Source of the DNA: Macrostomum lignano
Taxonomy: Eukaryota
Direction: 5' to 3'
Assembly (NCBI GenBank): GCA_002269645.1
Contig: NIVC01004866.1
Span: forward strand, 1 to 32,907
Length of the DNA stretch: 32,907 bases
Below, piece after piece: positions 1 through 32,907 of the stretch. The position numbers and the translations under genes were made by a program. The first letter of the stretch is position 1. The number at the start of each line of letters is the position of its first letter. The notes below the pieces were generated by a model that saw only the letters and a program-made list of their open reading frames with translations, did not search any database and was not told the origin of the DNA.

Positions 1-424
1 GATATTCAACAATGTCGTCAATATATAGTTCAAAAAGAATGGTAGAGAGAGGGTTGCTTGAAGAACACCTTTAGATATTGGGATTGGCTGGGTTTCATCA
101 TCATCATCATCTTTTTTTAGAATGAAGCAGGCATTTTTTATGCATGTTCTTGATAAGTTCCATCATTTGACCTTTAATACCCTGATTATCCGTTTTCCAC
201 AAAGGGTCGGTTGATTTAAGCTATCGAAGGCTTTTTCATATTCAACAAATCCAATAAAGAGTTCTTCTTTGTTGTAGATGGATTGGTTTATAATGTTGTA
301 AAGATTAAAACATTGGTCGATTGTGCTGTGATTGGGCTTGAAACCGTATTGGTATTTTGATATAAGATTGTTTGCGTATGCTAGGTTTTCGAGTCTGGAT
401 TTAATAATTTGGCAAAAGAGCTTG
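1..424 (-). mobile_element. Non-LTR retrotransposon (LINE) reverse-transcriptase fragment, duplicate of 8812-9236
   Basis: Near-identical to 8812-9236 apart from a few small indels. The minus strand encodes QYGFKPNHSTIDQ, FVEYEKAFDS and the GVLQG/LYIDD region. It is cut by the window edge on the left and by an abrupt junction to LTR sequence at 424/425. Confidence 0.88.
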
Positions 425-622
425 ACGCGGTATTTGGCAGCACCAAAAACACGAAGGCCCCGGCCGTGAGGCAGTGATCGCTTTATTTATGCAAGTTGAA
501 GTTAAGCCTGCGATGTACATAGAGAGCGAACGTACATTAAATCAATACGATGATTCAGCTAATTATTTGTCACGATTGCTAACAGTTCAGACTGCCTCTA
601 AGGCAAGGAATAAAATATTACA
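425..622 (-). repeat. 3' LTR copy lacking its terminal 6 bp (TGTAAC on +)
   Basis: Matches 9798-9995 and carries all four variants diagnostic of the 9792 LTR rather than the 14263 LTR. The PPT (TTTCTCCCCCAC on +) follows at 623-634. Confidence 0.93.
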
Positions 623-762
623 TTTCTCCCCCACAAAAGGAGCATAGCAACAGGGAATAAAAAGATGAGAGTGAAACACAGCTAGCGAAATGTAGAGTAA
701 AAAGAGGAACGCAGACTGTAATATACATTTCAATCACAGTCTCTGACAGTCCATGGCCTCAG

Positions 763-3695
763 TCACTCAGCGCTCACACCGAGGTAGTCCGGAGGACGCC
801 GCACCCTGGCCGGGTACCGCCGCTCGGCCTGGCTCGACTCCGGGGCGACCTCGTGGGTCACCGGCTGCTCGCGGAGCTGCTCCGCATCGGCCTGGGCTGC
901 GAGCCGCCTGCGCAGCCGGTTCACGTGCACCCAGTGGACCGGCCGAATGCCGAAGGCGCGGCGGATGCGCACCGAGTGGCCGCGCTGCTCGAGCACCGTC
1001 CAGTCCGGCTCCCAGTACGGCGCCAGCTTCGATCGCCGCATCTCGATCTGAGCAACACCTGGGTGCCTTGCGGAAACTGCGGCAGGTCCGACGCCTTCTT
1101 GTCGTGCGCCGCCTTCTGTTGCTGTCCGGCGGTCACCAGGTTTTCCTCAACGAACTCGTGGATGCGGGCCAACCGACGCTCCAGCAGCGCCGAGTAGGTG
1201 CCGATGTCATACTGCTGCTCGCTGGCCTGCACCTGCGGTGGAAGCTGCGGGTCGCGGCCGGTCATCACAGTCAGCGGCGTCACCTTGGTTGAGCTGTGGA
1301 CCCTGGAGTTGTAGGACAGGACCACCAGCGGCAGCTGCTCCTCCCAGCTGGACTCGGTCTCGGTGAACAGCCGCAGCAGTTGCAACAGCGACTTGTTGCC
1401 GCGCTCCACAAGGCCGTTTCCCTGCGGATGGTAGGGCGATGTGCGCGTCTTCCTGATGCCCAGCACTCGCAGCGTCTCCTGGGACAGCTCGCTCTCGAAG
1501 TTCGCGCCCTGATCCGAGTGGATGACCGATGGACTCCGAATAGCGAGAAAACCTTGACTGCAGCGTCCGCGATGGTCTTGGCAGTCTGGTCTGGCATCGG
1601 CATGGCGGTCAGGAACTTGGAGAACTGGTCCTGCATCACCAGCAGGTATAGCTGTTGCCGCGGTCTGACAGCGGCACCTTCAGCACGTCGATGGCCACAG
1701 TCTGCCAGGGCTTGCCGATCGGCATCTCTCCAAGTGGGGCCGCGGGGCGCTGCTGCGCCTTCTTTAGCTGGCAGGTCTGGCACTCCTGGCAGAAACTCAC
1801 CACGTCGCTCTGCAGTCCCGGCCAGTACGCGGCCTGCTTCAGCGTATCGGCCATCTTCTCTGGCCCGAAGTGGCCGCCGATGCCTTCGTGGAAGTCGGTC
1901 AGGAACTGGCGCCGCAGCGACTCCGGAATCACAGGAACGTCTCTCGGTCCTGCGGCGTCGTTGAATGCCCGGCAGAGAAAGCCATCTTGGATCCTCAGCT
2001 TCCGCCAGATGCGGCTGAGGTGTCTCAGGCTGGTGTCCGACCATCTTGGTGGAGTCGTGCTGTCCTTCTCCAGCGCCGCGAGGACCAGCTTGAGCTTCGG
2101 ATCGGCAAGTTGCGCCTGCCGCATCTCCTGATTGGACACCTTCGGCTTTAGCTCCGTTGCCGACGCTCCGATCACCTCGCCGTGGCTTTCGTGCATCCTG
2201 GACAGGCCGTCCGCCTCCACGTTGTCGACGCCCTTGGTATACTTGATGGTGAAGGCGAACTCCTGCAGCAGCAACCGCCAGCGCCCAAGCCGGCCATGGC
2301 TGTCGACCCGCTGAGAATTCAGAAACGTGAGTGGGCAGTGGTCGGTGAAGACCGTGAAGTGCCGGCAAGCAGGTAGTGCCTGTAGGTCTTCAGGGCGTGC
2401 AGGATAGCCAGGCACTCCTTCTCGACAGTTGAGTAGCCCTTCTCCGGTGCCGTAAGCGCTCTGCTGCAGTACTCAATCACCTGGTCTCCTTGCTTGAGCA
2501 CGATGCCGACTCCGGTGTTGCTGGCATCCGTGTAGAGCTGGAACTCCTTGGAGAAGTCCGGGTGGCCGATGATCGGCGGCTGCTGCAGGGCCTCCTTGAG
2601 ACGTCGGAATGCCGTGCCGCACTCGCTGGTCCACTCGAACTTCTCTGTTTTGCTCGTCAGTCTGTGCAGCGGCCCGGCGATGTCGGAGAAGCTCGGCACG
2701 TACTTCCTGTACTGGTTGCAGAGGCCCAGGAACTGCCGCACCTGCGTTGGCGAATGCGATATCGGCCACTCCTGGATAGCGCGCACCTTCTCAGGGCTCA
2801 CGGTGGCACCCTTGGCCGAGAACACGGTGCCGAGAAAAGTGACCTCCGGCAGGCCTAGCTGGCACTTGCGCCTCGGACGGTGAGCCAGCGCCTCTGATCT
2901 TCTCGAAGACTTCTCGCAGGTGCCGGAGATGCTCAGCCTTCGATCTGGAGAAGCACAGCGTGTCGTCCATGTAGGTGAAGGTCTGCGCGGCGCCTTTGAA
3001 CACGCGGTTCATTAGGATGGTGAACGAGCTCGGGCCGCCGCAGACGCCCTGCGGCATCCGCTTGAACTGGTACAGCGGCTTTCCGGCCCTGGGCTGAAGG
3101 CCGTCTTCTGCTTGTCTTCCGGCTTCATCGGAATTTGGAAGTAGCCGCCGTTCAGGTCGATCACCGAGAAAATCTCGTTGCCAGCCAACTTGTCCTTGAC
3201 GAAGTCCATCTGCGGAATGCCCTGCGCTGACCGCACCGTCTTCTTGTTCAGCTCGCGGTAATCGATCGTCAACCGCAGGTCACCGTTATTCTTCCGCACG
3301 TACACTGGAGTCGCCACGTACGGGCTGTCCGACTCCTCGATGACGTCATTGTCCAGCAGCTCCTGAATCAGCTTCCTCACCTCGGGCTCCCAGTGCACCG
3401 GGAGCTTCCTCGGCGGGATCCGCACCGGAACATCGTCAGTCAGCGGGATGCTGTGCTCGTGTCGATCCGTCAGCCCTGGCCGCCTGGTGAAAATGTCGCT
3501 GAACTCGCGCACCAAAGCTCGGATGTCCGGGTCCTCCGCGACTGGCAGGTCGATCTTGGTGAAATCCGGCACCAGCTTCTCTTCAATGTCCTCGAGCTGA
3601 CTGTCAGCATCGAGGTGACTCATGCCGTTGATCACACAAGAGTCCTTTGATGGGGTCTCTGCTGCACTGTCGCTGAAGTCCAGGCACATGTTGCA
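763..3695 (-). pseudogene. pol: pol fragment (RT-RNase H-integrase) split by frameshifts
   Basis: ORF pieces 3012-3689, 2791-3057 (YMDD), 2319-2825 (TDAS RNase H), 1636-2415 (HHCC zinc finger), 921-1466 (integrase core HPQGNGLVER) and 763-1041 (C-terminus RYPARVRRPPDYL). Confidence 0.92.
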
Positions 3696-8733: not shown

Positions 8734-9330
8734 TGGCTTGATCGTCTGCAAAGAGTAGGATGAGTGGGAAAGCAGATCTCGTAAGAGAGCGCCTAGCGCT
8801 AGAGAGTTCAAGATATTCAACAATGTCGTCAATATATAGTTCAAAAAGAATGGTAGAGAGAGGGTTGCCTTGAAGAACACCTTTAGATATTGGGATTGGC
8901 TGGGTTTCATCATCATCATCATCTTTTTTTAGAATGAAGCAGGCATTTTTATGCATGTTCTTGATAAGTTCCATCATTTGACCTTTAATACCCTGATTAT
9001 CCGTTTTGCACCAAAGGGTCGGTTGATTTAAGCTATCGAAGGCTTTTTCATATTCAACAAATCCAATAAAGAGTTCTTCTTTGTTGTAGATGGATTGGTT
9101 TATAATGTTGTAAAGATTAAAACATTGGTCGATTGTGCTGTGATTGGGCTTGAAACCGTATTGGTATTTTGATATAAGATTGTTTGCGTATGCTAGGTTT
9201 TCGAGTCTGGATTTAATAATTTGGCAAAAGAGCTTGCCAAGAATTGGTTGAATGCAGATTCCTCTGTAATTGTTGGGGTCGGCACTGCTGCTGATGGATG
9301 ATGTTCAGCCAAATTTGAAAAAAATATTTA
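8734..9330 (-). mobile_element. LINE reverse-transcriptase domain fragment (CR1/L2/RTE-like)
   Basis: Minus-strand translation: DPNNYRGICIQPILGKLF...QYGFKPNHSTIDQCF...FVEYEKAFDSLNQPTLW...KGVLQGNPLSTILFELYIDD...LFADD. It is truncated immediately after the FADD motif. Confidence 0.9.
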
Positions 9331-9791: not shown

Positions 9792-9995
9792 TGTAACACG
9801 CGGTATTTGGCAGCACCAAAAACACGAAGGCCCCGGCCGTGAGGCAGTGATCGCTTTATTTATGCAAGTTGAAGTTAAGCCTGCGATGTACATAGAGAGC
9901 GAACGTACATTAAATCAATACGATGATTCAGCTAATTATTTGTCACGATTGCTAACAGTTCAGACTGCCTCTAAGGCAAGGAATAAAATATTACA
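9792..9995 (-). repeat. 3' LTR (204 bp)
   Basis: TGTAACAC...ATATTACA. It differs from the 14263-14462 LTR by 3 substitutions and one 4-bp indel. Confidence 0.96.
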
Positions 9996-10007
9996 TTTCT
10001 CCCCCAC
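9996..10007 (-). other. Polypurine tract
   Basis: GTGGGGGAGAAA on the minus strand directly abuts the 3' LTR. Confidence 0.9.
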
Positions 10008-10135
10008 AAAAGGAGCATAGCAACAGGGAATAAAAAGATGAGAGTGAAACACAGCTAGCGAAATGTAGAGTAAAAAGAGGAACGCAGACTGTAATATACA
10101 TTTCAATCACAGTCTCTGACAGTCCATGGCCTCAG

Positions 10136-13100
10136 TCACTCAGCGCTCACACCGAGGTAGTCCGGAGGACGCCGCACCCTGGCCGCGGGTACCGCCGCTC
10201 GGCCTGGCTCGACTCCGGGGCGACCTCGTGGGTCACCGGCTGCTCGCGGAGCTGCTCCGCATCGGCCTGGGCTGCGAGCCGCCTGCGCAGCCGGTTCACG
10301 TGCACCCAGTGGACCGGCCGAATGCCGAAGGCGCGGCGGATGCGCACCGAGTGGCCGCGCTGCTCGAGCACCGTCCAGTCCGGCTCCCAGTACGGCGCCA
10401 GCTTCGATCGCCGCATCTCGATTCTGAGCAACACCTGGGTGCCTTGCGGAAACTGCGGCAGGTCCGACGCCTTCTTGTCGTGCGCCGCCTTCTGTTGCTG
10501 TCCGGCGGTCACCAGGTTTTCCTCAACGAACTCGTGGATGCGGGCCAACCGACGCTCCAGCAGCGCCGAGTAGGTGCCGATGTCATACTGCTGCTCGCTG
10601 GCCTGCACCTGCGGTGGAAGCTGCGGGTCGCGGCCGGTCATCACAGTCAGCGGCGTCACCTTGGTTGAGCTGTGGACCCTGGAGTTGTAGGACAGGACCA
10701 CCAGCGGCAGCTGCTCCTCCCAGCTGGACTCGGTCTCGGTGAACAGCCGCAGCAGTTGCAACAGCGACTTGTTGCCGCGCTCCACAAGGCCGTTTCCCTG
10801 CGGATGGTAGGGCGATGTGCGCGTCTTCCTGATGCCCAGCACTCGCAGCGTCTCCTGGGACAGCTCGCTCTCGAAGTTCGCGCCCTGATCCGAGTGGATG
10901 ACCGATGGGACTCCGAATAGCGAGAAAACCTTGACTGCAGCGTCCGCGATGGTCTTGGCAGTCTGGTCTGGCATCGGCATGGCGGTCAGGAACTTGGAGA
11001 ACTGGTCCTGCATCACCAGCAGGTATAGCTGTTGCCGCGGTCTGACAGCGGCACCTTCAGCACGTCGATGGCCACAGTCTGCCAGGGCTTGCCGATCGGC
11101 ATCTCTCCAAGTGGGGCCGCGGGGCGCTGCTGCGCCTTCTTTAGCTGGCAGGTCTGGCACTCCTGGCAGAAACTCACCACGTCGCTCTGCAGTCCCGGCC
11201 AGTACGCGGCCTGCTTCAGCGTATCGGCCATCTTCTCTGGCCCGAAGTGGCCGCCGATGCCTTCGTGGAAGTCGGTCAGGAACTGGCGCCGCAGCGACTC
11301 CGGAATCACAGGAACGTCTCTCGGTCCTGCGGCGTCGTTGAATGCCCGGCAGAGAAAGCCATCTTGGATCCTCAGCTTCCGCCAGATGCGGCTGAGGTGT
11401 CTCAGGCTGGTGTCCGACCATCTTGGTGGAGTCGTGCTGTCCTTCTCCAGCGCCGCGAGGACCAGCTTGAGCTTCGGATCGGCAAGTTGCGCCTGCCGCA
11501 TCTCCTGATTGGACACCTTCGGCTTTAGCTCCGTTGCCGACGCTCCGATCACCTCGCCGTGGCTTTCGTGCATCCTGGACAGGCCGTCCGCCTCCACGTT
11601 GTCGACGCCCTTGGTATACTTGATGGTGAAGGCGAACTCCTGCAGCAGCAACCGCCAGCGCCCAAGCCGGCCATGGCTGTCGACCCGCTGAGAATTCAGA
11701 AACGTGAGTGGGCAGTGGTCGGTGAAGACCGTGAAGTGCCGGCAAGCAGGTAGTGCCTGTAGGTCTTCAGGGCGTGCAGGATAGCCAGGCACTCCTTCTC
11801 GACAGTTGAGTAGCCCTTCTCCGGTGCCGTAAGCGCTCTGCTGCAGTACTCAATCACCTGGTCTCCTTGCTTGAGCACGATGCCGACTCCGGTGTTGCTG
11901 GCATCCGTGTAGAGCTGGAACTCCTTGGAGAAGTCCGGGTGGCCGATGATCGGCGGCTGCTGCAGGGCCTCCTTGAGACGTCGGAATGCCGTGCCGCACT
12001 CGCTGGTCCACTCGAACTTCTCTGTTTTGCTCGTCAGTCTGTGCAGCGGCCCGGCGATGTCGGAGAAGCTCGGCACGTACTTCCTGTACTGGTTGCAGAG
12101 GCCAGGAACTGCCGCACCTGCGTTGGCGAATGCGATATCGGCCACTCCTGGATAGCGCGCACCTTCTCAGGGCTCACGGTGGCACCCTTGGCCGAGAACA
12201 CGGTGCCGAGAAAAGTGACCTCCGGCAGGCCTAGCTGGCACTTGCGCCTCGGACGGTGAGCCCAGCGCCTCTGATCTTCTCGAAGACTTCTCGCAGGTGC
12301 CGGAGATGCTCAGCCTTCGATCTGGAGAAGCACAGCGTGTCGTCCATGTAGGTGAAGGTCTGCGCGGCGCCTTTGAACACGCGGTTCATTAGGATGGTGA
12401 ACGAGCTCGGGCCGCCGCAGACGCCCTGCGGCATCCGCTTGAACTGGTACAGCGGCTTTCCGGGCCCTGGGCTGAAGGCCGTCTTCTGCTTGTCTTCCGG
12501 CTTCATCGGAATTTGGAAGTAGCCGCCGTTCAGGTCGATCACCGAGAAAATCTCGTTGCCAGCCAACTTGTCCTTGACGAAGTCCATCTGCGGAATGCCC
12601 TGCGCTGACCGCACCGTCTTCTTGTTCAGCTCGCGGTAATCGATCGTCAACCGCAGGTCACCGTTATTCTTCCGCACGTACACTGGAGTCGCCACGTACG
12701 GGCTGTCCGACTCCTCGATGACGTCATTGTCCAGCAGCTCCTGAATCAGCTTCCTCACCTCGGGCTCCCAGTGCACCGGAGCTTCCTCGGCGGGATCCGC
12801 ACCGGAACATCGTCAGTCAGCGGGATGCTGTGCTCGTGTCGATCCGTCAGCCCTGGCCGCCTGGTGAAAATGTCGCTGAACTCGCGCACCAAAGCTCGGA
12901 TGTCCGGGTCCTCCGCGACTGGCAGGTCGATCTTGGTGAAATCCGGCACCAGCTTCTCTTCAATGTCCTCGAGCTGACTGTCAGCATCGAGGTGACTCAT
13001 GCCGTTGATCACACAAGAGTCCTTTGATGGGGTCTCTGCTGCACTGTCGCTGAAGTCCAGGCACATGTTGCAGGCCTTGATGAAGTCCAGCCCGATGATG

Positions 13101-13480
13101 ACGGCAGCAACCAGACCTTCAGACACGTAAAACGGGTGCCGCCGCTCGATGCCGCCGAGCGACACTGCCAGGCTGGCCACCTGCCGCACCGGCACCGCTT
13201 GCTGGTTGACTGCCCGCAGCTCCAGGTGCACGCTCTCCAGCTGAGCTGGCCGCATGCTCTGCAGAACCCGCTTGTCCACGATTGACACCTGGCTGCCTGA
13301 GTCGATAATCGCCGTGACGTCCACGCCTCCGATCCTGCACTGCAGCTTGGATGTCGCCGAGTTCGGCCTGATGACGACAGCTGCTGCGCTGCTGCTGGCT
13401 GCACCGCTCCCCTCTGCGCCCAGGAACAACCCACTCACGCTGGGGCCCGCGCTCAGAACTGGCCAGGGGTGCGGGCTCTG
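10136..13480 (-). CDS. pol: Pol polyprotein (aspartic protease, RT, RNase H, integrase), broken by several 1-2 bp indels in this assembly
   Basis: Motifs IIDSGSQVS (PR), YMDD (RT), YTDAS (RH), HEGIGGHFG...CQECQTC (IN zinc finger) and SDQG...NGLVER (IN core). The stop at 10136 is inferred from the frame preserved in the duplicate. The 5' boundary is approximate. Confidence 0.88.
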
Positions 13481-14243
13481 CCCCGGCCTGTGCCGTATCC
13501 CGGCGGATGATTGCAGTTCCTGGCGATGTGGCCGCGGCGGTGGCAGTTCCAGCAGGTCACCTCGCGCTGTCTCCTCGCACTGCGAATCGCGCAGGAGTCC
13601 GAAACCTTTGAGCCCAGCTTTGCCGCCAGGTCTTGGACCGTCGCCTGCAGCGAGCTGACCGCAGCCCTCAGTTCTGCCGTCTCCGCGCTGCCTGCAGCTC
13701 CGGCTGCCGCTGCAAGAGGCTGCTTGAATCCGTCCGTGGTGGCAGAAGGCAGCTCCAGTAGCAGTTGTGCCCGTGCGAGAGCGTCACTCACGGTCTTGGC
13801 TGACGCGTCCGCTCTGATCTGCTTGCTGATGTCCACCGGCAGTCCGCGATGAACTGGTGAGTCAGCATGGTGGCCGTTGCGCCTGCCTCGCTGATGCCAG
13901 CGTCCTTTAGCAGCTGCTTCAGGTGATAGAGAAAGAGCCGAGGAGATTCGCCCGGCAGCAGCTTCCGGCTCTCGAATGCATCCAGCGCTGAGAATTGCTG
14001 GCTGTCCGGGTGAAATGCCTGGCTCAGAGCTTTGGTCACTTTGCTGTAGTCGCTCTTGCTATTCTCGTCGAGCTCAAGAAAAACAGCCAGAGCCTCACCA
14101 TCCAAAAACGTTGGCAGGTGCAAATGCTTGTCATTTACCCACTTGTTGGCTGCCGCGCACAGCTCAAACCGCTGGAGCCACTCCTTAAAGTTGCCTGAGC
14201 TGAACGCCCTAGGAATCGCACGGTGACTGCCACCATCTGCCAT
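13453..14243 (-). CDS. gag: Gag with CCHC zinc knuckle (one frameshift near 13845)
   Basis: The ATG at 14243 gives MADGGSHRAIPRAF...WLQRFELCAAANKW, and the C-terminal piece has CWNCHRRGHIARNC. Adding one G restores QFIAGLPVDISKQIR. Confidence 0.85.
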
Positions 14244-14249
14244 AGTACA

Positions 14250-14260
14250 CTCTGCTACCA
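14250..14260 (-). other. Primer binding site complementary to tRNA-iMet 3' end
   Basis: TGGTAGCAGAG lies 2 nt inside the 5' LTR boundary. The eukaryotic initiator tRNA-Met ends ...CTCTGCTACCA, an 11-nt match. Confidence 0.9.
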
Positions 14261-14262
14261 CT

Positions 14263-14462
14263 TGTAACACGCGGTATTTGGCAGCACCAAAAACGCGAAG
14301 GCCCCGTGAGGCAGTGATCGCTTTATTTACGCAAGTTGAAGTTAAGCCTGCGATGTACATAGAGAGCGAACGTACATTAAATCAATACGATGATTCAGCT
14401 AATTATTTGTCACGATTGCTAACAGTTCGGACTGCCTCTAAGGCAAGGAATAAAATATTACA
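14263..14462 (-). repeat. 5' LTR (200 bp)
   Basis: Direct repeat of 9792-9995, bounded by TG...CA and followed by the TSD CATA. Confidence 0.96.
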
Positions 14463-17893: not shown

Positions 17894-18259
17894 TTAAATA
17901 ACTATACTAAACAAATTTGTTAAAAAAGTTAATCGACTGCGGCTTTTTGATTCATCTCTAATTTGAACAGTTTACAGTGTTGCTCGTTGCTAATCGCGAT
18001 TAAAAGTGAACGGTGAACATACTTTTCTGACAACAAGAATTTCTAATCACGAAAACGAAGAAAAAAGGAATATAATATGTATGGTTATTGTATTAATAAA
18101 TAGTTCGTAATAATTGGTAAGTTCGCAATTATTAGTAGTTATATCGCGACCAAAGTACGCCTGAGGCAATACTTAAGGGACAAAAAAGAACAAAGAAACT
18201 TCATGGACTAATATTTGCTTATCGTTAAATAGGCAAACAAGACTATTATAATAACAGCA

Positions 18260-19951
18260 TCATTCAACGTCAGATACACGTACTTCTTCAGGGAGCTGCT
18301 TTTCTGAGCCTTGAATATCTTTGCGTTGTCCTTGCGGATCACCCAACTGCTGAGCGCTCGATACTTTGGTCTTCTTCCTGCCAAAGGAGGCGATGTCGAA
18401 GATGAGCTCGAACAGCTCGCACAGGGTGAGCAGAGACATTCCCAGGTAGATGCCCATGATGCCGCCGACGTCCGAGATGAAGTTCTGCAAACCGTAGTCG
18501 ATCGAGAAGTTCATCCGATCGCACAGAACTCGATGCGGCTTGAAGTGCACTTTGAGCATGTTGCTGCGGATGTATGAGGACACGATCGACTCGTTTCCGT
18601 TCACGACGAGGTCGAGAGCCGGAACACTCAGATTCTTAGACTTGGCCCTCATCCAAACAGGTTCGATGGAGCTGCTGACGAACGGCATCATTGAGCTCTG
18701 AGTGGGCCAGTCGGAACTGGAGATGGTCGCGCTGTACTGCAGTGTGCTGCAAAGTCGCTTAGCTTTACATGCTTCTTTCGATATTCCGTCGAACTGAGTG
18801 GTGAGAGGTTCCAGAGATGGGTCGCTAAAAAATACCAAGAAGTTTGGATCACCTGTAAGGTTAAGTGCGAACTTCTTTCCACGCAGAGGCCACGGAAGAG
18901 GACCGGCATCGCTTGACAGATTGACGAGCTGCTGCATCTGTCGGTGGAACTCGTAGTAGAAGCAGTACGAGTAGCTGTACGAGTGCTTGTATGGAGTCTC
19001 GTCGTACGGGTTCACGAACTGAACGTCCGGCGGGTCGCTCAGACAGTCGAACTGACCAGCCTTGTACACCTGCTGCGTCATGTCGATCTCGACGGTGTGG
19101 GACTTTCCGGGTCCAAGCGAGAACGAGCTCACGAAATCGGACGGATACTCACCTGGAGGCGTGAGGAACACTTTCACACCTGCTTGTCTGTCGGGTCCGT
19201 TGTAGTCGGCGACATCGAGCGACCAGTCGGACACAGGAATGAGAGTTCGTCCTGCGTACACCATCTTGCGGATCGAGTGTCCGCTCGATGCGAGTCCTTG
19301 GAACGCCGAGTCCGTAACCAGGGTGACCACAATGCCGGATGATGAGCCGGTCTGTTCAATCTGTTGTTGCCACGTGCTGTTCAGAGTCCACTTGAGACAG
19401 CGCAAGTACATCGGATGGTAGAAGGTCTGCGCTTCGATGGGCGCATACTGGGCCATTCCAAATAGCTTAAACTTGAAGTCACTCGTGATGATGCTCTGTT
19501 CGTTTCGGTGAGCCAGAGCATCAATCAACAGCTGATATGATATTGACTGAGGATAAGCACGGGATAGCCTCATTTCTTGGGGTGTAGTTTCTGTTAATCC
19601 GTTTATTTGCAATCCCCGCCGTAGGACGGTTTGAGAGCTATTGAGCTGATCGTTGATTGCAGCAGCCGATGCCTCATCAATAGTAGCAGAGTAGCTGCCA
19701 GAGATCGGGTTCTCGAAACAGGCGTACACATCCGGGAACTGGAAGTTGAGACTGTTTCCATCAAGCGAGCTGGTGACCTGCCGAGACTGCAGCTTGACAA
19801 CGAATTGGTAGAATCCGTAAAAGAAGAGTCCCGACATCAGCAGCATCAGGATGAGCCAGAAAGCTCGCACAACCAACGGTTTGCTGCTCACTACTCTGGG
19901 CAGTCCGTGCGCTGAGGTGGAAGACATGGCTTCCTTGATCGGCTGCAGCAT
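18260..19951 (-). CDS. DEG/ENaC (amiloride-sensitive sodium channel family) subunit, paralog A, 563 aa, single-exon CDS
   Basis: N-terminal TSAHG motif, TM1 (AFWLILML...), FPDVYAC, AGVKVFL/SLGPGKSHTV palm motifs, and TM2 ISDVGGIMGIYLGMSLLTLCE with the GxS filter. Confidence 0.93.
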   Translation of the reverse strand: MLQPIKEAMSSTSAHGLPRVVSSKPLVVRAFWLILMLLMSGLFFYGFYQFVVKLQSRQVTSSLDGNSLNFQFPDVYACFENPISGSYSATIDEASAAAINDQLNSSQTVLRRGLQINGLTETTPQEMRLSRAYPQSISYQLLIDALAHRNEQSIITSDFKFKLFGMAQYAPIEAQTFYHPMYLRCLKWTLNSTWQQQIEQTGSSSGIVVTLVTDSAFQGLASSGHSIRKMVYAGRTLIPVSDWSLDVADYNGPDRQAGVKVFLTPPGEYPSDFVSSFSLGPGKSHTVEIDMTQQVYKAGQFDCLSDPPDVQFVNPYDETPYKHSYSYSYCFYYEFHRQMQQLVNLSSDAGPLPWPLRGKKFALNLTGDPNFLVFFSDPSLEPLTTQFDGISKEACKAKRLCSTLQYSATISSSDWPTQSSMMPFVSSSIEPVWMRAKSKNLSVPALDLVVNGNESIVSSYIRSNMLKVHFKPHRVLCDRMNFSIDYGLQNFISDVGGIMGIYLGMSLLTLCELFELIFDIASFGRKKTKVSSAQQLGDPQGQRKDIQGSEKQLPEEVRVSDVE

Positions 19952-20763: not shown

Positions 20764-22488
20764 TTATTCGGGAAGATCTCTTGACGATTGATGATTAGTC
20801 AATGCTGCCACACCAATCTTGTTTGTTACTCCACTTGTGTTCGAAGGTCTCCATTTTTTTAAGCTGACTGAGACGATGTCGAAGATAAGCTCGAACAGCT
20901 CGCACAGGGTGAGCAGAGACATTCCCAGGTAGATGCCCATGATGCCGCCGACGTCCGAGATGAAGTCCTGCAAACCGTAGTCGATCGAGAAGTTCATGCG
21001 ATCGCACAGAACTCGATGCGGCTTGAAGTGCACTTTGAGCATGTTGCTGCGGATGTATGATGACACGATCGACTCGTTTCCGTTCACGACGAGGTCGAGA
21101 GCCGGAACACTCAGATTCTTAGAGTTGGCCCTCATCCAAACAGGTTCGATGGAGCTGCTGACGAACGGCATCATTGAGCTCTGAGTGGGCCAGTCGGAAC
21201 TGGAGATGGTCGCGCTGTACTGCAGTGTGCTGCAAGGCTTCTTGGTTTTACATTTAGCGTTTGTTACTTTAGCAAACTGCTCCATGTTATAATTTGCTTT
21301 GTAAAATATCAAAAAGTTTGGCTCGTCAGTAAAATTCGTGACGAACTTTTTTCCACGCAGCGGCCACGGAAGTGGTCCGACAGCGTTTGACAGATTGACG
21401 AGCTGCTGCATCTGTCGGTGGAACTCGTAGTAGAAGCAGTACGAGTAGCTGTACGAGTGCTTGTACGGAGTCTCGTCGTACGGGTTCACGAACTGAACAT
21501 CAGGCGGGTCGCTCAGACAGTCGAACTGACCAGCCTTGTACACCTGCTGCGTCATGTCGATCTCGACGGTGTGGGACTTTCCGGGTCCCAGCGAGAACGA
21601 GCTCACGAAGTCGGACGGATACTCACCTGGAGGCGTGAGGAACACTTTCACACCTGCCTGTCTGTCGGGTCCGTTGTAGTCGGCGACATTGAGCGACCAG
21701 TCGGACACAGGAATGGGAGTTCGTCTTGCGTACACCATCTTGCGGATCGAGTGTCCGCTCGATGCGAGTCCTTGGAACGCCGAGTCCGTAACTAGGGTGA
21801 CCACAATGCCGGATGATGAGCCGGTCTGTACGATCCTTTGTTGCCACGTGCTGTTCAGAGTCCACTTGAGACAGCGCAAGTACATCGGGTGGTAGAAGGT
21901 CTGCGCTTCAGCGTCCTCGAAGTCAAGCATTCCGTAGTTGCTATTGAACTTTATGTCGCTTGAAATGACTGCCTGTTCGTGTCGGTGGGCCAGCGCGTCG
22001 ATTAAAAGTTTGTAAGATATCGACTGTGGAAAGACACTTGTAAAGTATTTTTTAAAATGTTTTGTTTCTCTGTCCAATTTTTTTAACTCGCGCGTTAGGG
22101 CAAAGTCGAAGCTGTTGAGCTGATGATTGATTGCAGCAGCCGATGCCTCATCCACAGTCGCAGAGTAGCTGCCAGAGATCGGGTTCTCGAAACAGGCGTA
22201 CACATCCGGGAACTGGAAGTTGAGGCCATTTCCTTCAAGCGTGCTCGTTACCTGCCGAGACTGCAGCTTGACAGCGAATTGGTAGAATCCGTAAAGGAAG
22301 AGGCTCGACATCAGCAGCATCAGGGTGAGCCAGAAAGCTCGCACAGCCAGAGGTTTGCTGCTGACAATTCTCGAGAACCCATGGGCCGAAGTTGAGGCCA
22401 TGGCCATCTTCAACTGTTGTTTCATTTTGATTTGAGAATAACTCGTACAGTTTTTTTGCAATATGAGCTTGAGTTCCTTTCGGTTCAT
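20764..22488 (-). CDS. DEG/ENaC subunit, paralog B, 574 aa, single-exon CDS
   Basis: Same motifs as paralog A (TSAHG, FPDVYAC, ISDVGG...GMS) in an uninterrupted ORF. The finger, thumb and tails are divergent. Confidence 0.93.
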   Translation of the reverse strand: MNRKELKLILQKNCTSYSQIKMKQQLKMAMASTSAHGFSRIVSSKPLAVRAFWLTLMLLMSSLFLYGFYQFAVKLQSRQVTSTLEGNGLNFQFPDVYACFENPISGSYSATVDEASAAAINHQLNSFDFALTRELKKLDRETKHFKKYFTSVFPQSISYKLLIDALAHRHEQAVISSDIKFNSNYGMLDFEDAEAQTFYHPMYLRCLKWTLNSTWQQRIVQTGSSSGIVVTLVTDSAFQGLASSGHSIRKMVYARRTPIPVSDWSLNVADYNGPDRQAGVKVFLTPPGEYPSDFVSSFSLGPGKSHTVEIDMTQQVYKAGQFDCLSDPPDVQFVNPYDETPYKHSYSYSYCFYYEFHRQMQQLVNLSNAVGPLPWPLRGKKFVTNFTDEPNFLIFYKANYNMEQFAKVTNAKCKTKKPCSTLQYSATISSSDWPTQSSMMPFVSSSIEPVWMRANSKNLSVPALDLVVNGNESIVSSYIRSNMLKVHFKPHRVLCDRMNFSIDYGLQDFISDVGGIMGIYLGMSLLTLCELFELIFDIVSVSLKKWRPSNTSGVTNKIGVAALTNHQSSRDLPE

Positions 22489-25705: not shown

Positions 25706-27424
25706 TCAAGGCTCGCTTGAGATGCTGCTGATGCTGAGGCTCTTTGTAGACTGTTTTGGCGGCGGCGCGTGACTCTTTTTTCTGACTCCCAACTGCTGGA
25801 TTGAAGAAGCTGCCGGCTTGGAGCTTGACGCTCTTGCTTTCTTCCTGCCAAAGGAGGCGATGTCGAAGATAAGCTCAAACAGCTCGCACAGGGTGAGCAG
25901 AGACATTCCCAGGTAGATGCCCATGATGCCGCCGACGTCCGAGATGAAGTCCTGCAAACCGTAGTCGATCGAGAAGTTCATCCGATCGCACAGAACTCGA
26001 TGCGGCTTGAAGTGTACTTTGAGCATGTTGCTGCGGATGTATGAGGACACGATCGACTCGTTTCCGTTCACGACGAGGTCGAGAGCCGGAACACTCAGAT
26101 TCTTAGACTTGGCCTTCATCCAAACAGGCTTGATGGAGCTGCTGACGAACGGCATCATTGAGCTCTGAGTGGGCCAGTCGGAACTGGAGATGGTCGCGCT
26201 GTACTGCAGTGTGCTGCAAAGTCGTTTAGCTTTACATGTCTCTTTCGATTTTACGTCGATCTGACTGGTGAGAGGTTCCAGAGATGGGTCGCTAAAAAAT
26301 ACCAAGAAGTTTGGATCACCTGTAAGGTTAAGTGCGAACTTCTTTCCACGCAGAGGCCACGGAAGAGGACCGGCATCGCTTGACAGATTGACGAGCTGCT
26401 GCATCTGTCGGTGGAACTCGTAGTAGAAGCAGTACGAGTAGCTGTACGAGTGCTTGTATGGAGTCTCGTCATACGGGTTCACGAACTGAACGTCCGGCGG
26501 GTCGCTCAGACAGTCGAACTGACCAGCCTTGTACACCTGCTGCGTCATGTGGCATGTGACCACGTCAGGTGTGGGACTTTCCGGGTCCCAGCGAGAAAGA
26601 GCTCACGAAATCGGACGGATACTCACCTGAAGGCGTGAGGAACACTTTCACACCTGCCTGTCTGTCGGGTCCGTTGTAGTCGGCGACATTGAGCGACCAG
26701 TCGGACACAGGAATGGGAGTTCGTCTTGCGTACACCATCTTTTGGATCGAGTGTCCGCTTGATGCGAGTCCTTGGAACGACGAGTCCGTAACCAGGGTGA
26801 CCACAATACCGGATGATGAGCCGGTCTGTACGATCTTTTGTTGCCACGTGCTGTTCAGAGTCCACCTGAGACAGCGCAAGTACATCGGATGGTAGAAGGT
26901 CTGCGCTTTGATGGACACATATTCGGCCATTCCGTAACCTGTTTTAAACTTGAAGTCACTCGTGATGATGCTCTGTTCGTTTCGGTGAGCCAGAGCATCA
27001 ATCAACAGCTGATATGATATTGACTGAGGATAGGAACGTGAGAGCGTCATCTCTTGGGTGTAGCGTCCATTGATCCGTTTCTTTGAAGTTTTCGCCGTAG
27101 GAGTGTTTGAGAGCCAATGAGCTGAGCGTTGATTGCAGCAGCCGATGCCTCATCAATAGTAGCAGAGTAGCTGCCAGAGATCGGGTTCTCGAAACAGGCG
27201 TACACATCCGGGAACTGGAAGTTGAGACTGTTTCCATCAAGCGAGCTGGTGACCTGCCGAGACTGCAGCTTGACAACGAATTGGTAGAATCCGTAAAAGA
27301 AGAGTCCCGACATCAGCAGCATCAGGATGAGCCAGAAAGCTCGCACAATCAGCGGTTTGCTGCTCACTACTCTGGGTAGTCCGTGTACTGATGTTGAAGC
27401 CATGGCTTTCTTGACTTGCTGCAT
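25706..27424 (-). pseudogene. DEG/ENaC paralog C, disrupted
   Basis: Full-length homolog. It has a 1-bp homopolymer loss near 27055 (possible assembly error) and a 10-to-17-bp replacement at 26551-26567 that introduces an in-frame TGA and a frameshift. Confidence 0.85.
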
Positions 27425-28296
27425 GCTTGATTTTTCTGGGTTTTAATTTTTTGAATGCGAAGCTTCCTCTCTGACCGGGATGACTTGCTATTTTTGTGAT
27501 GCTTTTTTAACCATTTGGCGATCGCCTCCGTTCTTCGCCCCCCGGCGGACGGCTCATTGTGCATTGTCTGATCGCATATCTATGTAAAGTACATTGCTCA
27601 ATGCTCAATATCGGCACCGAACAAATCTTCTAAATAAATATTATGGCTCCGCCCATGTGGAGGCTTTGAGCTTTTTCTACATTTTTTAACTTTCTTTTTT
27701 CGTCGGAGTCCGCCATTCATTTTCGCCACTGCTGTACCACTCACATGAAAATCAATTCTATTGAACTTGAAAGTGACTGGTCATACGCAGACAAGTCTGC
27801 TGAAGTTAAAATATGGGTTGCATTGTAACACTGCAACTATTTACTCAGCTAGACGTTGCTCACAAAAAATACGAACGTATTGTACAGCACCTTTTACAAA
27901 CAGATGCCATTGAAACAGACTTAGTAAAAGGCTTTTTGGTATAGAGAAAGTGCATTTTGCTGGTTGAAGCCACATAAACGCATTGGAAGCAGGGCAAACG
28001 ATAGAACCTTAAATCAATACTCTTTTGGAACAAATGGTTTCAAAAAGATCCCACTGAATTATGGATATGCTATGAAAATTTGCTGTGCTACTGCAAACGC
28101 ACTGTGTAAAATTAAAATCAACTATTTATCAGAGAGCGAGAGTTGTGTCCATCAACTTGGGAAGAGAGCCAAAGCGATTTTGGGAGTGTTTGTACAGCTT
28201 AGAGATCGCGATTTATGAGTAGCAGCCAAAATTAAATCTTAGCAAAGTTTTGAAACACTGCATTATAAGTGCAGCACACTAGAGCTCTGAAGAAGA

Positions 28297-28568
28297 ATGC
28301 AGCAAGTACTGGATGCCACAGCATCTTCCGAAACAGACCGACTGTCACGGGTTGGAAGCAAGACGCTGTACGAGCGTATATGCGATTGGAAACAGGTGGT
28401 GGAAACAGGTTGAACTTCCAGTTTTCCTGTAAGCTTTTTGTTATGAGAACCCGATCTCTGGTAGCTACTCTGCGACTGTGGATGAGGCATCAGCCGCTGC
28501 AATCAATGCTCAGCTCAGTGGCTCGCAAGTTGTAATGAGGCGAGGCTTTCAATGCTTGGGTACGTCAG
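28297..28568 (+). pseudogene. Inverted DEG/ENaC 5' fragment (paralog D) lacking TM1
   Basis: MQQVLDATASSETDRLSRVGSK aligns to MQQVKKAMASTSVHGLPRVVSSK. After a deletion spanning TM1, 28445-28528 matches C 27107-27190 at 75/84 nt, mostly at synonymous sites. Confidence 0.8.
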
Positions 28569-29390
28569 TGTTACGTTTTCTACTTCAACAATTATTACAT
28601 CCTCAAGGCTATCATCGGACATAAAAGTATAAGTCGAAGAAGCTTTGTTTAGAGTACCGCGATTCACGGCTTATATTTGCCTCTAACGAGCTCACACAGA
28701 TGATTGTTCTTTGCGGTACTGTAGTATTCGGCTCTTAAGGTAATAAAAGGTCCTACCCTAGACAATAGACATGCAGAGAGAACTAAAGTCCGTTTAGTTT
28801 TTGTCTATACACAACATTCCCCTTTGTCAATATTTTTTCTCCGGATCTGCATGCTTTAACTATACTGTAGGCGATCCGATTTCTCAGCTTGCTTCGATCG
28901 CTCAGTATCCTTGTAGGCTCTCCTCTGGTCCCGCCTGAGATTCTCCTCGGCTTGGGACGTCTTAGACCCGCTGAGTTGATTCACTCTCTCGCCGCTCTTT
29001 CTCGGTAGTAGTTTGGTCGCTCTGAACTCTCCTAGGATCCTCCAGAATAGTTCAGAGAGTAGTTCAAATGATAGATGACGAGCCTGGACACAACGGTTTG
29101 TTGTGTCCAGGTAATTCTGCTCTGACGATTTGGTCGACGTGTCGCTTCCAGGCTTGTCCGTTGACCAACAGTGCGGACGATCACCTTGGCAGAAATCCAC
29201 CTATTCTCTCGCTCCCTTCTGAAGTCCAACGTCAGAACTGAGTCTCCTTGGATGCAACCGACGCAGAGTTGAACAATAAAGATTGGAGTCAGGTGAATGA
29301 AGAGCTGTCTTTTCATGAGCTGTAGCTCGCATACAAGCTAGACCGCTTGCTCCCTCGAGCTAAGACTTAAATTGGCGCAGTACTGCGCTT
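28569..29390 (-). mobile_element. Decayed 3' end of a Ty3/gypsy element (integrase C-terminus, PPT, probable 3' LTR 28569-28816)
   Basis: The minus strand has QGDSVLTLDFRRE..NRWISAKVI (SH3-like integrase tail) and ERSKQAEKSDRLQYS*. A PPT-like AAAGGGGAA (28817-28825) is directly followed by TGTTGTG, and the putative LTR ends ...GTAACA at 28569. There is no second LTR to confirm the boundary. Confidence 0.55.
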
Positions 29391-29662
29391 TGCAATGTGC
29401 TTTTCTGTTCTGATCTCTGTTTACGTTTTTATATTTTTCACTGCATTTGTTTTGTATTTTCTTGTTATTTTTCTATTATATATTCAGCAGTTAAGAACGT
29501 GTATCTTTTTTTCAACAGCTTACCAGCATCAAAATTTATCAGCACAAAACTTCTTAGTCTGTAGAATTTTCTTTAATTGATTATTGAATAAGAGCAAGGC
29601 GGTGGTTCATTCAGTTATTTATCAACGGTACTTAGATCAAAGAGAAAACAAGGGAGAGTGAG

Positions 29663-29922
29663 TGATTTGTTTCACTGCCGCCGCCGTGTATTTATAGCTT
29701 TGTTATTGTCTTCCGGAAATTTCTAGAAAGATTTAGCTAATTTTAAAAAAGCGAAATAACCCTTTAATTATATACATTACGTAAATATAATTAGAACATT
29801 AATACTTAAGTGATAATTAATTATTTACTATTTATATGCGTATGTTATAAATTAGCTGCTAACTCAAAGAAGTTTCTGGAAATAGTTTTTGACTTTTAGA
29901 AATCTGAAGAAATTTCGGGAAA
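29663..29922 (-). promoter_or_regulatory. Heat-shock-type core promoter: three perfect HSEs, TATA box and Inr-like start
   Basis: 4-unit HSE at 29710-29729 (TTC/GAA/TTC/GAA at 29711/16/21/26) and 3-unit HSEs at 29868-29882 and 29908-29922. TATAAATA lies at 29689-29696 (minus) and TCACTC near 29663. Confidence 0.7.
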
Positions 29923-30896
29923 GTCATTAAAGTACGCTACAAGTCTATTTTTTGTCCTGAGAAAGGGCACATAAACTGCATGTGCCGCTGTCCAATATTG
30001 GATAATCTACTGCGATGCATTAGGCTGTAGTATTGAAGTATTGAATTTACATTTAGCAAAACGTCATGACGTCATTCGTGATCTACATGTACAAATCGCA
30101 CACAGTGAATCAAATCACGGAGTACATTTGCTCATCATGTAAAGTAAATTAAACGAGAAAGTAAATTCACTTAGGCAAAGTAAATTAACCTGCTGAACGC
30201 ATGGTGCCGGCTAGGCAAATTACCTTTCAGCAGTAAATTTGCTCCCAGGAAGATTTTGCGGGAGAATAATTTGCCGAAATTTACTTCACCAGCGCAGCAG
30301 CGGCGTCAGTTAATTTACGTTAATAAACGTTAATCGCGTGACGAAATTTATTATTGTTTGAAAGTTAATTAACCATTAAGCTACATGTATTAGTTATAAC
30401 CCTCAATATTAACCCTCGTTTTAAAGGGGCAATAAAATTTTGTGCTGAGAAAATAAAGACTTCCTGTCTACGTAGTGTATTTTTCGGCGAAAATTGGCCT
30501 TCAAAACTTTTTCCGTGAAACGTGATCCTCGCTTCCTGCATATACGCTGCTTGTCCTAGTCTAAGCAAGGCTTAACCTGTTCGGTTTAGAGCTAAATAAA
30601 AAATTCAAGTTCGAATTTCTGAAAAGGCATTATGAATGACGAGCATTTCTAACCAGGACAAAGAGGAAAAGAGAACAGATTATCATGTGCAGCTATTTTA
30701 ATGTTAATAGAAGTTTGTCATTAACCCTTATTTTGTATCGCCTCAAAAGAACCGGCAAAGCTATACTCGTACTCCAGGAAAGAAGAGAACTAAATAATTG
30801 ACTAATATTTGCATATTGCTTGAGATCTGCATAACAGTACATGTACTATTACAATAATAGCTTCCTTCAACAGCAGATACTTCCTCACGGAGGATG

Positions 30897-32562
30897 CTAT
30901 TCTGTGCACTGATTATCGCTACTTTGTTCTTGCAGATCACCTAGCTGCTGAGCGCTCGATACTTTGGTCTTTTTCCTGCCAAAGGAGGCGATGTCGAAGA
31001 TGAGTTCGAACAGCACGCACAGGGTGAGCAGAGACATTCCCAGGTAGATGCCCATGATGCCGCCGACGTCCGAGATGAAGTCCTGCAAACCGTAGTCAAT
31101 GGATCGCAAGTTCATCCGAAGTGCACTTTGAGCATGTTGCTCGATGCGGCTTGAAGTGCACTTTGAGCATGTTGCTGCGGATGTATGAGGACACGATCGA
31201 CTCGTTTCCGTTCACGACGAGGTCGAGAGCCGGAACACTCAGATTCTTAGACTTGGCCCTCATCCAAACAGGTTGGATTGAGCTGCTGACGAACGGCATC
31301 ATTGAGCTCTGAGTGGGCCAGTCGGAACTGGAGATGGTCGCGCTATACTGCAGTGTGCTGCAAAGTCGTTTAGCTTTACATGCCTTTTTCGATTTTACGT
31401 CGATCTGACTGATGAGAGGTTCCAGAGATGGGTCGCTAAAAAATACCAAGAAGTTTGGATCACCTGTAAGGTTGAGTGCGAACTTCTTTCCACGCAGAGG
31501 CCACGGAAGAGGACCGGCATCGCTTGACAGATTGACGAGCTGCTGCATCTGTCGGTGGAACTCGTAGTAGAAGCAGTACGAGTAGCTGTACGAGTGCTTG
31601 TATGGAGTCTCGTCGTACGGGTTCACGAACTGAACGTCCGGCGGGTCGCTCAGACAGTCGAACTGACCAGCCTTGTACACCTGCTGCGTCATGTCGATCT
31701 CGACGGTGTGGGACTTTCCGGGTCCAAGCGAGAACGAGCTCACGAAGTCGGATGGATACTCACCTGGAGGCGTGAGGAACACTTTCACACCTGCCTGTCT
31801 GTCGGGTCCGTTGTAGTCGGCGACATTGAGCGACCAGTTGGACACAGGAATGGGAGTTCGTCTTGCGTACACCATCTTGCGGATCGAGTGTCCGCTCGAT
31901 GCGAGTCCTTGAAACGACGAGTCCGTAACCAGGTGACCACAATGCCGGATGATGAGCCGGTCTGTTCAATCTGTTGTTGCCACGTGCTGTTCAGAGTCCA
32001 CTTGAGACAGCGCAAGTACATCGGATGGTAGAAGGTCTGCGCTTTGATGGACACATATTCGGCCATTCCGTAACCTGTTTTAAACTTGAAGTCACTCGTG
32101 ATGATGCTCTGTTCGTTTCGGTGAGCCAGAGCATCAATCAACAGCTGATATGATATTGACTGAGGATAGGAACGTGAGAGCGTCATCTCTTGGGGTGTAG
32201 CGTCCATTGATCCGTTTCTTTGAAGTTTTCGCCGTAGGAGTGTTTGAGAGCCAATGAGCTGAGCGTTGATTGCAGCAGCCGATGCCTCATCAATAGTAGC
32301 AGAGTAGCTGCCAGAGATCGGGTTCTCGAAAACAGGTGTACACATCCGGGAACTGGAAGTTGAGGCTGTTTCCATCAAGCGAGCTGGTGACCTGCCGAGA
32401 CTGCAGCTTGACAACGAATTGGTAGAATCCGTAAAAGAAGAGTCCCGACATCAGCAGCATCAGGATGAGCCAGAAAGCTCGCACAATCAGCGGTTTGCTG
32501 CTCACTACTCTGGGTAGTCCGTGCACTGATGTTGAAGCCATGGCTTTCTTGACTTGCTGCAT
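30897..32562 (-). pseudogene. DEG/ENaC paralog E, disrupted
   Basis: Full-length homolog with homopolymer indels near 32330 and 31933 (possible errors). A templated duplication/replacement at 31098-31141 breaks the frame before TM2. Confidence 0.85.
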
Positions 32563-32761
32563 GCTTGGTTTTCTCGTTTTAATTTTTTGAATGCGAAGCT
32601 TCCTCTCTGACCGGGATGACTTGCTATTTTTGCGATGCTTTTTTAAGTAGTTGGCAATCGCCTCCGTTCTCCGCCCCGGCGTACGGCTCAGTGTACATTT
32701 CTGATCGCATTTTTATGTAATGTACATTGCTCAATGCTCAATATCGGCACCGAACAAATCT

Positions 32762-32805
32762 AGAACTTTCTAGAACCCCTAGAACTTTCTGGAACATTCT
32801 AGAAG
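32762..32805. promoter_or_regulatory. Heat-shock element array (perfect 3-unit plus perfect 5-unit nGAAn inverted repeats) upstream of paralog E
   Basis: GAA/TTC/GAA at 32763/68/73 and GAA/TTC/GAA/TTC/GAA at 32782/87/92/97/32802, 200 bp upstream of the ATG at 32562. Confidence 0.75.
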
Positions 32806-32907
32806 CTTACTATGTGGGTATATTTTGAGGGTGGTGCGTGCGATCTTGAGAGACTACTTTTCATGATTGTTGCTATCGAAGACAGATCAACTACATGGAT
32901 CTCTCTC

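Follow-up and report, generated by a model that had tools for sequence, protein, structure and literature searches.

At this locus of Macrostomum lignano, two copies of a DEG/ENaC channel gene, C and E, have a 5' flank in common, and a run of heat-shock elements (HSEs) lies beyond that flank in E only. This arrangement raises the question of whether one of two recent duplicates has gained or lost control by HSF, or whether the HSEs belong to the DNA on their other side. We approached the question by asking which of the copies could still encode a channel, whether the HSEs are more than a chance motif, which way a promoter built on them would face, and what kind of boundary separates them from the shared flank. 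The window referred to throughout is the whole stretch of DNA that was analysed, 32,907 nt in length, and the features on which the argument depends are collected in Table 1.

Table 1. Positions of the channel gene copies, HSEs, TATA-like boxes and junction features in the window.
Feature	Position	Strand	Description	Basis
Paralog A	18242-19947 by self-blastn; gene 18260-19951	-	Intact, intronless DEG/ENaC; 563-aa uninterrupted ORF	
Paralog B	20870-22410 by self-blastn; gene 20764-22488	-	Intact, intronless DEG/ENaC; comparable uninterrupted reading frame	
Paralog C	25706-27628, including the 204-bp shared 5' flank (25839-27628 by self-blastn)	-	DEG/ENaC pseudogene	
Paralog E	30845-32761 by self-blastn, 5' flank included; pseudogene 30897-32562	-	DEG/ENaC pseudogene; A-like 3' end	
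E 5' flank common to C (27425-27628)	32563-32761	-	90.7% identity; final 47 bp identical	
Junction TCT	32759-32761		Common to C and E; equally possible as the start of the HSE-bearing sequence	
HSE block 1	32762-32776		Three perfect inverted nGAAn units: aGAAc tTTCt aGAAc	Sequence reading and scan
HSE block 2	32781-32805		Five perfect inverted units: aGAAc tTTCt gGAAc aTTCt aGAAg	Sequence reading and scan
TATA-like octamer TATATTTT	32819-32826	+	14 nt right of the last GAA (32802-32804); candidate core promoter facing away from E	
TATA variant CATAAAAA	32717->32710	-	44 nt left of the array, on the E strand	
Second HSE cluster	29689-29921	-	Four units at 29711-29728, three at 29869-29881, three at 29909-29921	

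Self-comparison of the window with blastn resolved four tandem minus-strand copies of the channel gene (A, B, C and E) and an inverted fragment, D. A functional paralog was taken to be one whose reading frame is unbroken and encodes the amiloride-sensitive sodium channel (ASC) domain over its full length. The Pfam scan covered A, in which the domain is full-length (PF00858, E = 6.6e-43, profile positions 3-455 of 455), and B was judged by its reading frame. Neither E nor C has a full-length, uninterrupted ASC-domain frame. Three frame-breaking lesions interrupt E (+1 T near 32332, -1 C near 31933 and a net +13-nt duplication or rearrangement near 31135, before TM2) and two interrupt C (-1 near 27058 and +7 nt near 26567). 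The single-base changes lie within homopolymer runs, where assembly error is a possible cause; it is no possible cause of the +13 and +7 lesions, which are complex. No lesion is shared by the two copies, which indicates that both decayed after they separated. In addition, E is a mosaic. Its 5' end is 99% C-like, the part around 31672-31522 is 100% A-like, and the 3' end again resembles A (92% versus 79%), a structure that points to conversion among the paralogs; judging from these tracts, gene conversion or recombination has evidently been active in the cluster. The only close database relatives of A are M. lignano PF00858 proteins, which assigns the window to M. lignano or a species very near it and not to Caenorhabditis. 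The protein M. lignano P0001 is 86% identical to A, and it is essentially identical over ~235 aa to the C-terminal segment of C (92% over the whole 274-aa alignment). Since C and E are both pseudogenes, no channel protein has been put under heat control. The first-pass annotation had seen regulatory divergence between recent duplicates here; the sharp difference in HSEs between E and C bears out that part of the claim, but both copies are frameshifted and the difference has no consequence for a protein.

Fragment D (28299-28579; 130 bp at 28397-28528) comes from the 5' part of another paralog type; it is inverted and truncated, and is closest to the N-terminus of M. lignano P0001. Near it on the minus strand, at 28807-28839, TGTTGTGTAT comes after a purine tract, AAAGGGGAA, and matches the opening 10 nt of the published Mag ID206 LTR exactly, with an alignment score that is not significant. 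Judging from this sequence, D may have been truncated by insertion of an LTR element.

The HSEs were identified by scanning the whole 32.9-kb window for alternating GAA and TTC triplets at 5-bp spacing, with a minimum of three units. Five arrays of at least three units were found, two of them at 32762-32805 and three at 29711-29921, against 0.39 expected per window from mononucleotide shuffles and 0.47 from a first-order Markov model. Arrays of at least four units are expected 0.01 times per window, and arrays of at least five units appeared in 0 of 500 simulations. In a 21.5-kb M. lignano control locus (L001), no array of at least three units was found. The site at 32762-32805 has the canonical form of an HSE, that is, at least three contiguous, alternately inverted nGAAn units at 5-bp spacing. 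Read directly over 32400-32907, the plus strand runs ...aacaaatct, block 1, ccct, block 2, cttactatgtggg and then TATATTTT, with a degenerate unit at either edge of the blocks (aATCt and cTTAc). The GAA-to-GAA distance between the blocks is 9 bp, or 1 bp out of register, and the site is thus two adjacent HSEs of three and five units. An eight-unit HSE array had been described at first; the eight perfect units stand, but they form a pair of elements and not a single one. The array comprises two canonical heat-shock elements, in a form hardly attributable to chance, in M. lignano-type DNA, and on its sequence we consider it quite probable that the motif is a genuine HSF site. Rfam and tRNA scans gave no RNA gene near the array, and a bacterial promoter and terminator scan, of a type unsuited to eukaryotic DNA, returned nothing.

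The array resembles canonical heat-shock promoters, such as those of Drosophila hsp70 and the C. elegans hsp-16 pairs, in having at least three contiguous inverted nGAAn units, and here too two adjacent HSEs would permit cooperative trimer binding and possible use in both directions. It differs from them in that no heat-shock protein gene is visible; the sole gene within reach is a DEG/ENaC pseudogene, and a rightward target would lie past the end of the window. The Hsp20 heat-sensor gene of M. lignano was considered as a neighbour of the array and rejected, as neither its promoter nor its qPCR primers occur in the window.

In canonical heat-shock promoters, the HSEs lie 10-50 nt upstream of a TATA box, and HSEs work in either direction. 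A TATA-like box is present on each side of the array. On the right, TATATTTT, with a T at position 6, matches a TATA box poorly; CATAAAAA, on the left, does so better, both being imperfect. The latter is the TATA variant that had been placed about 45 bp downstream of the array, and its distance of 44 nt agrees with that description; at the homologous site, C reads CATAGATA. The 14-nt gap between the array and TATATTTT is the same as that of an independent pair in the window, a 4-unit HSE with TATAAATA at 29689-29728, and is close to the ~12 nt of the validated heat promoter of the M. lignano Mag LTR. Because TATATTTT lies on the plus strand at the spacing used by the other HSE promoter of the window, the array would appear no worse suited to a promoter that fires rightwards than to one directed at E. 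By spacing, the rightward arrangement would be the canonical one, with the leftward box still within the working range. A plus-strand ATG at 32864 opens a 15-codon frame that runs off the window.

We propose that the DNA right of the junction has a heat-shock-type promoter of its own, of which the array forms the HSF-binding portion. What lies there would be a stress-inducible transcription unit that is cut by the end of the window; it is probably a mobile element, the alternative being a neighbouring or stress gene. Under heat stress, HSF trimers would occupy both blocks, one on the three-unit block and one to two, cooperatively, on the five-unit block. Bound HSF would then drive transcription from TATATTTT, with the rightward unit as the likelier primary target. 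Since HSEs act in both directions, divergent transcription from CATAAAAA into E may also occur; because E is a pseudogene, this would give at most a heat-inducible non-coding transcript on that side. We hold this composite picture, in which an HSF-driven rightward unit is combined with possible divergent transcription into E and with a boundary left by a tract end, with evenly divided confidence. A mobile-element origin of the array is something that we infer by analogy with the biology of the species, and only infer, because the window holds no second copy of the sequence, the resemblance to the Mag ID206 LTR is confined to the motif, and a TG terminus is lacking.

The second HSE cluster is of interest in its own right. 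A textbook TATAAATA (29696->29689, minus strand) lies exactly 14 nt downstream of its 4-unit HSE (29728->29711), and the cluster would pass for a complete minus-strand heat-shock promoter. It lies inside a candidate 382-bp solo LTR at 29560-29941, with TGTAG...CTACA ends and a 4-bp direct repeat, AGTC; the chance expectation for such ends is ~0.16. No heat-shock protein ORF was found downstream of the cluster in the window. The ORFs at 28856-29316, beside the middle HSE cluster, were considered as an integrase tail and rejected, as they gave no Pfam match and their tblastx matches were spurious. Upstream of this promoter (minus strand) are a CArG-like CCAATATTGG at 29992-30001 and a perfect CRE palindrome, TGACGTCA, at 30067-30074. 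Within 29992-30285, AGTAAATT occurs in five copies in 143 bp, and it occurs eight times in the window against 1.2 expected. From its sequence, the 29992-30285 region may be either a stress or immediate-early-type enhancer or a set of transposon subterminal repeats.

The minus strand of 9798-14462 is taken up by a frameshifted Ty3/gypsy-type retrotransposon in which protease, RVT_1, RNase H, Integrase_H2C2 and rve domains are present; its LTRs contain no HSE. Positions 1-3695 match 8812-9236 plus 9798-13072 as a duplication of 99.7% identity, and a 23-bp minisatellite of ~4.4 kb (3696 to about 8130) lies between the duplicated parts. The duplication may be assembly redundancy at the contig end.

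ONSEN, a Ty1/copia element of Brassicaceae, is activated by heat, and HSEs in TE promoters can make neighbouring genes heat-responsive; ONSEN is a plant copia element, however, and its likeness to the array is conceptual only. Closer parallels exist within M. lignano. The Mag, CsRN1 and Gmr1/Osvaldo families of Ty3/Mdg4 elements have one to four canonical HSEs per LTR (Ustyantsev et al., Mob DNA 2025, PMC12801592; preprint 10.1101/2024.12.18.629116). HSE-bearing LTR families of this species are induced more than 250-fold at 37 °C, induction is lost once the HSEs are mutated, canonical HSEs upstream of the TATA box are necessary, and solo LTRs of such families occur near genes (PMC12801592). 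In the Mag LTR heat promoter, the proximal HSE lies ~12 nt from a putative CATAAATA box, and two more HSEs lie up to ~75 nt upstream (PMC12801592). TE-borne HSEs, which the first-pass annotation had invoked, are thus a real phenomenon and are documented in M. lignano for LTR retrotransposons (PMC12801592).

It is conceivable, if rather unlikely, that the array is itself the U3 of an LTR or solo LTR (Mag, CsRN1 or Gmr1), truncated at its 5' end at the junction, with a heat promoter that fires rightwards. The families just described, with their one to four HSEs per LTR and solo LTRs near genes (PMC12801592 and the preprint), make such a source plausible, and the array likewise has grouped TTCTAGAA-type HSEs in the same or a sister species. 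Between them, the published LTR promoter and the array have HSEs about 12-14 nt upstream of a (C/T)ATAAATA-like box; the gap at the array is 14 nt, and an HSE followed by a TATA-like box 14 nt on is typical U3 architecture. Scored with the overlapping regular expression of PMC12801592, the array has four HSEs, equal to the highest number given for CsRN1. It is also possible that the window is an entire contig with a repeat at its end, and the candidate solo-LTR ends and AGTC duplication around the second HSE cluster are also in keeping with this origin. The LTR comparison, which covered Mag ID206 alone among these families, weakens the case. Against Mag ID206, the sole published LTR sequence, the array gave only 11-13-nt matches within the HSE motif, the middle cluster gave 17 nt, and there was nothing beyond. 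The junction (AAATCT/AGAAC, with a slash marking the boundary) has no TG of a TG...CA-type LTR terminus, and the array is unlike both the other HSE cluster and the LTR retrotransposon of the window. Matches confined to the motif and the missing TG terminus together indicate that the array is not a clean insertion of the Mag ID206 family. The array was also rejected as a member of the families marked by the published qPCR primers.

We return to the proposed rightward promoter and to the boundary that separates it from E. By blastn, E 30970-32761 and C 25839-27628 are 95.3% identical. The roughly 200 bp of 5' flank first reported as common to C and E is indeed shared; it is absent from A and B, and A resembles E no further than the start codon. 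Homology between C and E stops at 27628/32761 and the first HSE unit starts at the very next base, 32762, so the HSEs begin precisely where they had been said to begin. Beyond the junction no residual similarity between C and E was found, the Smith-Waterman score being below the shuffle mean. Past 27628, C continues TCTAAATAAAT, again as first described. The scan found no 3-unit HSE array in the flanks of A, B or C, and no HSE in C beyond 27628. The junction letters are AAATCT/TCTAAAT in C and AAATCT/AGAACTT in E. In the 146 bp of E from the junction to the window end at 32907 (102 bp past the array), the C-type flank (TCTTCTAAATAAAT...) does not resume, and these 146 bp have no second copy within the window. 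No target-site duplication is visible at the junction. An exact 24-mer scan of metagenome contigs with the array-side sequence gave no match, and no contig encoding the ORF of paralog A or the first ORF of E was found in the contig index.

The TCT at the junction may be a 3-nt microhomology where a duplication or conversion tract stopped, an overlap that arose by chance when other DNA inserted, or a Helitron-type 5' TC after a host A. Microhomology is possible because an HSE normally reads TTCTAGAA. As far as the letters go, a duplication or gene-conversion tract that ended here would account for the boundary no less well than a discrete insertion or deletion. Since E is a mosaic, the boundary is most simply read as such a tract end with TCT microhomology.

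The alternative offered by the first-pass annotation, that E gained or C lost HSF control by a discrete insertion or deletion at 32761/27628 and that E is transcribed from CATAAAAA upon heat, is in our view unlikely. It would account for the sharp stop of homology at the first HSE unit, and HSE bidirectionality would allow it. Moreover, CATAAAAA is similar to the putative CATAAATA box of the LTR heat promoter validated in M. lignano, whose HSEs lie up to ~75 nt upstream of that box. Several M. lignano PF00858 transcripts, given with no coordinates, are mildly up after 2 h at 37 °C (log2FC 1.6-3.2; 10.1101/2024.12.18.629116, Table S2). Heat does therefore raise the transcription of some channel paralogs, and E could be one of them, although these transcripts are not assignable to E. 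On the other hand, E and C are both pseudogenes and CATAAAAA is not conserved in C. A discrete event also fares poorly at the junction itself, with no target-site duplication, no return of the C flank within 146 bp, and a tract end that fits equally well.

A further doubt concerns the motif itself, which might be a non-functional tandem repeat of 10/19-bp period that mimics HSEs, with no HSF binding and no heat response. TRF does call a period-10 repeat (4.7 copies, 32759-32804), and a 19-bp unit, CTAGAACTTTCT[A/G]GAAC, is present twice, which shows that local duplication contributed to the array. All eight GAA/TTC triplets are perfect, however, while the spacer bases vary, and this is the pattern of a binding-site array, as expected under selection for HSF binding, and not that of a drifting minisatellite. 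With TATA-like boxes at canonical distances, a second HSE promoter 3 kb away, and such motifs experimentally necessary for heat induction in M. lignano (PMC12801592), a mere repeat is very improbable.

The least probable origin, which we regard as remote, is the 5' end of an HSE-bearing Helitron-like rolling-circle element inserted between A and T upstream of E: the E junction reads AAA/TCTAGAAC (5' TC after host A), the empty-site-like AAA/TCTTCT of C starts with T, and the junction has neither an inverted repeat nor a TG terminus, but the match is of 3 nt only, with a chance of ~1/16 to 1/64, and a literature search gave no report of HSE-bearing Helitrons in Macrostomum. The model for such an origin is Helitron1_CE, which PMC12801592 cites as carrying HSEs next to genes in Caenorhabditis. 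In both cases HSE arrays would have been brought beside genes by a mobile element, and the array junction is compatible with A/TC; Caenorhabditis belongs to a different phylum, however, and the likeness to a Helitron at the array is limited to these 3 nt. Just as remote is the wider proposal that the array ends an undescribed flatworm mobile element other than an LTR retrotransposon, possibly Helitron-like (A/TC), that disperses ready-made HSF-binding modules and has made a DEG/ENaC copy 200 bp away heat-inducible. If true, this would be a second, independent route of TE-mediated heat-shock rewiring in Macrostomum.

The array has the appearance of a standard heat-shock promoter module, which a mobile element may have supplied, rather than of a novel mode of regulation. 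It is a set of canonical HSEs beside a dead gene copy, in a species from which mobile promoters with HSEs have been described before. Because C and E are pseudogenes and the phenomenon has been published for this species, the gain is incremental; it would be of greater interest if the flanking sequence were a new family of HSE-dispersing elements. If the array is bound by HSF, it would provide another case of heat-shock regulatory DNA set beside an unrelated gene. With HSEs upstream of E and none upstream of C, and with proximal flanks that are 91% identical, the two copies form a natural paired comparison of the reach of an HSE module.
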